Shown here: positions 50,701 to 51,507 of the stretch, piece after piece
Layout of the letters: every line of letters starts with the position of its first letter
Position numbering within the stretch: position 1 is the first letter of the stretch
Assembly (NCBI GenBank): GCA_950097015.1
Contig: CATNEN010000030.1
Location: 3,100,001 to 3,164,000 of the forward strand
DNA: 64,000 nt
Direction of reading: 5' to 3'
Origin: Macrostomum hystrix
Lineage: Eukaryota; Animalia; Platyhelminthes
The notes under the pieces: model-generated
The model's input: the letters and a program-made list of their open reading frames with translations, nothing else
What the model was told of the DNA's origin: nothing
Database searches by the model: none
Made by a program: the position numbers and the translations under genes

Positions 50701-51301
50701 GTCGATGACGCGGTCGGCCAGGCGCGCCCGGTCGGCCAGCCGTCCTGACGGATCGCCGATGCGAGCAGTGGCGCCGCCCACAATGAACAGGGCAGTCTGG
50801 CCCAGAGTACGCAATCTCAGCAAGGCAACAATAGCCAGTAGGTTTCCCAGATGTAGGCTATCAGCTGTTGGATCGAAGCCGCAGTAGAAATGTCTGCCGC
50901 CGGCTGTTTGAGAGCCAGTGTTCAAATATTCGTTGAAATACTTCTCACTGCGGGCATTAGATTCATAGAAAAGAGACCTATACGTAATGGTCAGAAGTTC
51001 CAAGCTCTAACAACTAGGCAACAAATAAGGTAGATAATCGAATTCAGAATACCTCAACTAATAACTAAAGTACTAATAACAAGATAGTCTAGTTTTTCGA
51101 GATTCATTCAAGTTTAAAAAAGTACCTTTTCAAAGGCAGCAAGCTTTGAAAACAGCCTCGATTGAACAATGCGCTAATGGCATCGCTAACCTGCGCTTTG
51201 CTGCTGCTGCTGCTGCTGCTGCTGCTGCTGCTGCTGCTGATTGTGCCATGCGAAGACAAACACCGGCGGCACAGGTTTGCCGCAAATAATAATTTCGAAC
51301 G
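44798..51301 (-). CDS. YARS2: Mitochondrial tyrosyl-tRNA synthetase (about 510 aa; no genomic ATG in the first coding exon)
   Basis: Exons 51301-51126, 50947-50606, 48105-47889, 47044-46835, 45991-45826 and 45219-44798 (1533 nt, in frame). [17 protein letters not shown] (HIGH), [58 protein letters not shown] (KMSKS), S4-like C-terminus; N-terminus [17 protein letters not shown] is presequence-like. Confidence 0.95.
45238..45690. repeat. 24-bp minisatellite (TACTGTCTGTCATGCTGTAGCTCA)n
   Basis: About 19 units in the last YARS2 intron, starting 18 bp from the acceptor. Confidence 0.96.
46075..46790. repeat. About 35-bp minisatellite with internal inverted repeats (GGAGCGGAGCGGGGAAGGCTGAACCTTCAGTGACC)n
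   Basis: Fills YARS2 intron 4. Confidence 0.93.
47117..47200 (+). mobile_element. tRNA-like SINE head (third type or diverged)
   Basis: TAGCCCAGTGG (A box) and GGAGTTCGAATC (B box); no complete tRNA cloverleaf is evident. Confidence 0.45.
47352..47667 (+). mobile_element. SINE family 2, full length, inserted in an 11-bp (GGCTGTATACT)n repeat
   Basis: A/B boxes and full body; TACACCTGGCTGTATACTGGCTGT is present on both flanks. Confidence 0.88.
48428..48645 (+). mobile_element. SINE family 1 (internally deleted)
   Basis: TGTAGCCTAGTGGCTAGAGCG...GTTCGATTCCCG...TAGCAAGACACTTAA. Confidence 0.85.
49530..50520. repeat. 16-18-bp purine-rich minisatellite (AGAGTACAGATGGGAG)n
   Basis: Occupies about 1 kb of YARS2 intron 2. 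Confidence 0.95.
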
Positions 51302-51507
51302 CTGTTAATGGCAAGTGTTAAAATTTGATTACTTATTTTCAAGTTAGTTTATTCCATATTATATACTATGGACATCTAGATAATAGAACACTAGTCTACA
51401 GACTAATTTCTAGAAGTCCTTATTAGATAACCTAGATGTGTAGAAATTAATTATAATCGATAATTATTAATTAAGGGTTCAAGGAGTTTGAGATTACGCC
51501 TTGTTAA

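Follow-up and report, generated by a model that had tools for sequence, protein, structure and literature searches.

In the flatworm Macrostomum hystrix, the gene coding for the mitochondrial tyrosyl-tRNA synthetase (YARS2) very probably obtains its start codon from the trans-spliced leader, the last three bases of which are AUG. This reading is supported by the borders of the exons, the lack of a start codon in the genome, leader genes that end in ATG/GTAAG (a slash between letters marks a splice or cleavage site), and a transcript 5' piece that joins at the acceptor and has no place on 50600-52020. The proposed mechanism is that the YARS2 pre-mRNA would be trans-spliced to the spliced leader (SL) at a CAG acceptor (51304-51302), which would place the terminal AUG of the 35-base leader in phase 0 directly before CGT (...UUGCAUG-CGU-UCG...). 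Translation would then begin at the sole AUG of the leader and yield M-R-S-K-L-L..., a basic extension without acidic residues that would probably act as mitochondrial presequence for a bacterial-type TyrRS of 511 residues. All coordinates refer to the window, i.e. the whole stretch of 64,000 nucleotides that was analysed (contig CATNEN010000030.1, positions 3,100,001 to 3,164,000).

YARS2 lies on the minus strand as six coding exons. Together they measure 1533 bases (511 codons with the stop counted), a length that closes the frame when reading begins at the base directly after the acceptor. An open synthetase frame from the acceptor onwards had been claimed in the initial annotation and is borne out, exon 1 starting in phase 0 at CGT. 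Exon 1 (51126-51301) has 176 bases, i.e. 58 codons and 2 bases, and codes for a presequence-like N-terminus, a run of 13 serines and a conserved LxxRG..P helix. It is followed by intron 1 (50948-51125; 178 bases, GT..AG), which is crossed by the RNA joint 50947 to 51126, and by exon 2 (50606-50947), where the catalytic domain begins and its HIGH motif, DSLHLGNL, is located. Exon 3 (47889-48105) matches PF00579 with an E-value of 1.3e-11, and the end of an RNA contig at 50605 matches 48075-48104. Exon 4 (46835-47044; PF00579, E-value 2.8e-11) carries the KMSKS-type motif KLGKS. Exon 5 (45826-45991) was identified by tblastn with P0003, P0020 and P0001 and has a weak PF00579 match; its borders were read from the sequence, and its 3' end (45826-45845) reads ...TTATTATTGCATGGAG followed by GTACGG. 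Finally, exon 6 (44798-45219) codes for the C-terminal part and ends with a TGA stop (44800-44798); its acceptor was placed by eye, and the phase closes. All searches were run on single exons. Introns 2, 4 and 5 consist mostly of minisatellites (50400-50530, 46100-46800 and 45230-45700, minus strand) with units of about 16 to 45 bases, and no matches were obtained with Rfam and ARAGORN over the window.

The best match of exon 2 among solved structures is the human mitochondrial TyrRS (2PID, E-value 3.8e-22), bacterial TyrRS being next, and the same exon matches PF00579 (tRNA-synt_1b) with an E-value of 3.6e-15. In Pfam, this family is above cut-off in exons 2, 3 and 4 and weak in exon 5. Both class I signatures are present, HLGN in exon 2 and KLGKS in exon 4. 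Judged from these similarities, the gene is a mitochondrial (bacterial-type) TyrRS, nearer to the mitochondrial/bacterial than to the cytosolic/archaeal type. PF00579 occurs at four loci genome-wide, and the three others can account for the cytosolic TyrRS and two TrpRS; of the exon 1 region, the 220-Mb genome has a single copy. Exon 6 gave neither a Pfam match nor a significant BLASTP match to P0003. Its terminal ...FLLIKWDFL resembles by eye ...FYIVKWLRL, and this is the only resemblance to the S4-like C-terminal tRNA-binding domain. An exhaustive representative protein search with exon 2 returned a closest match of 59% identity (P0001) and no Macrostomum orthologue, and a word search restricted to candidates of 62-198 amino acids returned no Macrostomum protein.

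The border of exon 1 carries the argument on the start codon. On the minus strand the order is cat taa cag/cgt tcg aaa tta tta ttt gcg gca aac ctg, and the exon continues with tgc cgc cgg tgt ttg tct tcg cat ggc aca atc (agc)13 aaa gcg cag gtt agc, to end with ttg aaa ag/gtact. The end of the outron with the putative trans-splice acceptor occupies 51302-51310, where an in-frame TAA (51307-51305) lies directly ahead of the CAG (51304-51302). Exon 1 contains two ATGs only, at 51249 and 51183, both in frame +1 and thus out of frame, and the first of them begins a dead-end ORF of 39 codons that closes within the exon. The initial annotation had described the TAA before the acceptor, the out-of-frame ATGs and the translation, and was correct in every detail. 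There is no in-frame ATG upstream of the HIGH motif in exon 1 or exon 2, the latter lacking any Met, and the first in-frame Met, read by eye, sits in exon 3, past the HIGH motif. Since this motif lies in exon 2, no genomic ATG can start a functional enzyme, and the earlier claim that YARS2 lacks a genomic start codon stands. The human YARS2 gene has a genomic ATG. The human protein (PDB 2PID/3ZXI) shares with that of the flatworm the HIGH-type and KLGKS motifs and an N-terminal extension before the LxxRG helix, whereas the flatworm protein differs from it by the run of 13 serines and by a C-terminal exon without a Pfam family match.

By chance alone, a frame would stay open over 17 codons before the first ATG fairly often (about 0.4). 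As ORF length is in this respect ordinary, the case rests on the RNA border, on the homology of the RG helix and on the lack of Met before the active site. The helix was recognized in a multiple alignment (A1) of the exon 1 peptide with the N-termini of six mitochondrial-type TyrRS representatives, a BLASTP search with the same peptide against one homologue having been without success. R48 and G49 are invariant in this alignment and lie within the usual LxxRG(I/L)...FP helix. They are preceded by 47 residues here, as compared with about 32-65 in most of the aligned homologues, all of which begin with Met. With an N-terminus of this length, only the initiator Met is missing, and not another coding exon. 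An alternative donor inside exon 1, CAG/GTTAGC at about 51190, which would combine with ATG 51249 and keep the frame into exon 2, was rejected: all four RNA joints use 51126, and the conserved LxxRG helix would also be removed.

The RNA data are Logan contigs from four public runs, which were compared with the stretch 50600-52020. One contig per run skips the 178 bases of 50948-51125, bounded by GT..AG on the minus strand, so that all four runs must be RNA. The joint 50947 to 51126 between exon 1 and exon 2 is thus present in 4/4 runs, with one contig each, and fixes the 3' border of exon 1. The CAG/AGC trinucleotide microsatellite that codes for the poly-Ser run (51192-51248) breaks every RNA contig; it was left out of the comparison and is spanned by none of them. 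On its two sides, contigs extend over 51249-51302 and 51126-51191 and agree with the genome at every letter. The 5' part of exon 1 is covered by one contig only, in one of the four runs: record 2 of run X1, with 111 letters and a depth of 7.9, matches 51302-51249 without difference and carries 24 extra 5' letters that have no place on 50600-52020. The match ending at 51302 means that the transcript leaves the genome at the predicted acceptor. Further upstream, no contig in any of the four runs covers 51320-51559.

From their position and length, we infer that these 24 letters belong to the spliced leader. A k=31 assembly tracks a leader common to thousands of mRNAs only as long as the k-mer is unique, and should therefore retain about 23-25 leader letters; this length is our own reckoning, obtained by subtracting from 31 the 6-8 exon letters that make a k-mer unique. 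The contig has 24 letters and the shared G, i.e. 25, 5' of exon 1. The match takes in one further base, the G at 51302; the final G of the leader would produce this, and so would that of any donor exon ending in G.

The 35-base leader published for M. lignano is CGGTCTCTTACTGCGAAGACTCAATTTATTGCATG (PMC8629364), and the SL RNA genes found here end with ...TTATTGCATG followed by GTAAG, identical to it. Its last 29 bases with the donor, CTTACTGCGAAGACTCAATTTATTGCATG and GTAAG, have 19 exact copies in the genome. At one locus (L001), the whole 35-base leader is present, followed by GTAAG and by an Sm-like ATTTTTAG. The leader, the 3' part of which can be written as ...AATTTATTGCATG or ...GAAGACTCAATTTATTGCAT, has one ATG only, formed by its last three bases directly before the GU donor. 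A leader variant with three mismatches, also ending with ...TTGCATG/GTAAG, has about 70 genome copies. It reads ...GAAGACTCTCTTTTTTGCATG before GTAAG (the 5S-linked form also ...CTCTCTTTTTTGCAT), with three differences with respect to the rDNA-linked leader. The variant SL RNA gene and a 5S rRNA gene make up a 927-base unit that is repeated about 70 times in an array at about C39:12667890-12753120; a variant SL RNA locus (L006) lies at G000:C39:12667700-12669800. In M. lignano, only a single SL has been identified (PMC12582326).

When the leader is joined in silico to the CGT at 51301, AUG-CGU-UCG is obtained in phase 0, with no stop into the conserved ORF. The proposal of the initial annotation that an SL AUG would give an in-frame, Met-extended YARS2 is thereby strengthened, the leader genes ending in ATG/GTAAG, the contig departing at the acceptor and the gene having no genomic start. 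The leader AUG is probably also the codon that is used. Against this reading, the acceptor TAACAG corresponds only in part to [T/C]TNCAG, the top trans-acceptor motif of M. lignano, a point where the present case departs from a system with an identical 35-base leader, and the Kozak-type context of the leader AUG is weak (U at -3, C at +4).

The composition of the N-terminus fits a mitochondrial presequence. Including the added M, the first 20 residues contain 4 K/R and 0 D/E, no acidic residue is found before position 41, and R15-C16-L17/S18 fits the R-3 processing motif (R-x-L/S). The N-terminal helical hydrophobic moment is not above that of shuffled versions (fraction 0.35). Hence, of the earlier description as a typical presequence, the compositional part holds, whereas the amphipathic moment does no better than shuffles. 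The extension would direct import.

Of the other explanations for the missing start codon, the one that fares best is a short cis-spliced 5' exon, for example one ending with ...GGCAATG/GTAACT at 52595, or another one upstream, that would be spliced onto 51301 and supply both the ATG and the 24 letters. We regard it as unlikely. The 52595 candidate ends in ATG and would yield the same M-RSKLL, and the shared G at 51302 suits any exon ending in G; moreover, the identity of the 24 contig letters with the leader is inferential. Between the acceptor and the upstream stop, 19 combinations of a cis ATG, an open frame and a phase-0 GT are present in 2.6 kb. The 52595 candidate scores 7/9 against MAG/GTRAGT, the best of the 19, and no other candidate is better; however, it lacks G at +5 and therefore misses the donor motif GT[AG]AG, the consensus published for M. 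lignano (PMC8629364) on which this test is based. None of the 19 (0/19) carries that motif. The candidate put forward in the initial annotation, ATG/GTAACT at 52595, is accordingly disfavoured. In addition, it would fall inside the 3' UTR of the upstream gene, if this UTR runs from the stop at about 53902 to 51826, and nothing in a cis exon would explain why the contig breaks off at about 25 letters.

Much less credible is an assembly length error, not a multiple of three, in the CAG microsatellite, with which the true start would be ATG 51249 and the protein would begin with MAQS-polyAla. This is the first genomic ATG of the exon, and the interval 51192-51248 is spanned by no contig, but errors in trinucleotide repeats normally gain or lose whole units, and the RNA shows 0 differences on either flank. 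With only one basic residue, a poly-Ala N-terminus would make a poor presequence, nothing more than a 5' UTR feature would remain of the precise border at the acceptor and of the unplaced 5' piece, and the leader AUG would still precede, in the other frame. Finally, a non-AUG start within exon 1, for example at the in-frame CTG of codon 10, with the leader AUG skipped, is highly improbable: in-frame CTG and TTG codons are present and the context of the leader AUG is weak, but initiation at CTG10 would drop half of the basic N-terminal segment, and scanning ribosomes reach the leader AUG, which comes first and is in frame, before any near-cognate codon.

The surroundings of YARS2 are compatible with an operon-like arrangement. 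The upstream gene (57328-53902), on the same strand, codes for two tandem Nuc_deoxyri_tr2 domains (PF15891, nucleoside 2-deoxyribosyltransferase-like), each split over two exons. A transcribed stretch upstream of the acceptor (51826-52020; record 7 of run X1 and record 12 of run X2), to which no strand is assigned, has a sharp end at 51826 in two runs and may represent the 3' end of this minus-strand gene. If so, YARS2 lies 525 bases downstream with a repeat element in between, a spacing compatible with the operon criterion applied to M. lignano (PMC8629364). The repeat element in the outron (51560-51750) has a summed RNA contig depth of about 450-2100 and many different flanks; Rfam and ARAGORN call nothing there, and the element is probably a SINE-like repeat that is dispersed and occurs in many transcripts. 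Upstream of YARS2, a 38-base tandem repeat (ctaaatactagacagtacagatccct...) occupies 52030-52500 in about a dozen copies and is entered by RNA contigs from 51826-52020. Downstream of the gene, a large open exon (40890-42119, minus strand) codes for the metalloprotease motif HEMIHAHLF and a C-terminal zinc-finger-like VNCPVCSS...HLDACL, and its product looks by eye like a SprT/Spartan-type protease.

Initiation at the AUG of a spliced leader is documented in schistosomes (Cheng, Cohen, Ndegwa and Davis 2006, J Biol Chem 281:733, cited in PMC9851317 and PMC12582326) and is assumed for Macrostomum. In S. mansoni, the AUG of the leader lies in frame in 28% of trans-spliced transcripts, and over 40 cDNAs depend on it (Cheng et al. 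2006, cited in PMC9851317). In parasitic flatworms, every reported SL ends in ATG and is able to supply a start codon (PMC12582326), and the final ATG of the Macrostomum leader has been termed a translation start codon (Wiberg et al. 2023, PMC10468722). In M. lignano, 20-30% of the genes are trans-spliced, with an enrichment in conserved genes (Ustyantsev and Berezikov 2021, PMC8629364; Wiberg et al. 2023, PMC10468722); the parts of PMC8629364 and PMC10468722 used here give no list of genes dependent on the leader AUG. The M. hystrix YARS2 resembles the schistosome SL-AUG mRNAs in a leader that ends with AUG and a GU donor and in an acceptor in phase 0 of an ORF without its own start, but differs from them in the host, a free-living macrostomorph, in the gene, YARS2, and in that it is known here from sequence and contig borders. 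Because SL-AUG initiation is established flatworm biology, the novelty implied in the initial annotation finds no support, and the flatworm YARS2 is a good example of a known habit, not a new principle.

One may ask if leader-donated starts are concentrated on N-terminal targeting extensions in Macrostomum, YARS2 being one case, with trans-splicing as an obligatory switch for import-competent mitochondrial proteins. We consider this a long shot; if true, the switch would possibly be regulated and would do more than the neutral supply of a Met. At a practical level, gene predictors that need a genomic ATG will truncate or miss YARS2 and similar genes in Macrostomum genomes, and the recognition of phase-0 trans-splice acceptors corrects such truncated gene models. 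For the biology of these worms, the case would show that an essential enzyme can rely wholly on trans-splicing for its initiation codon.
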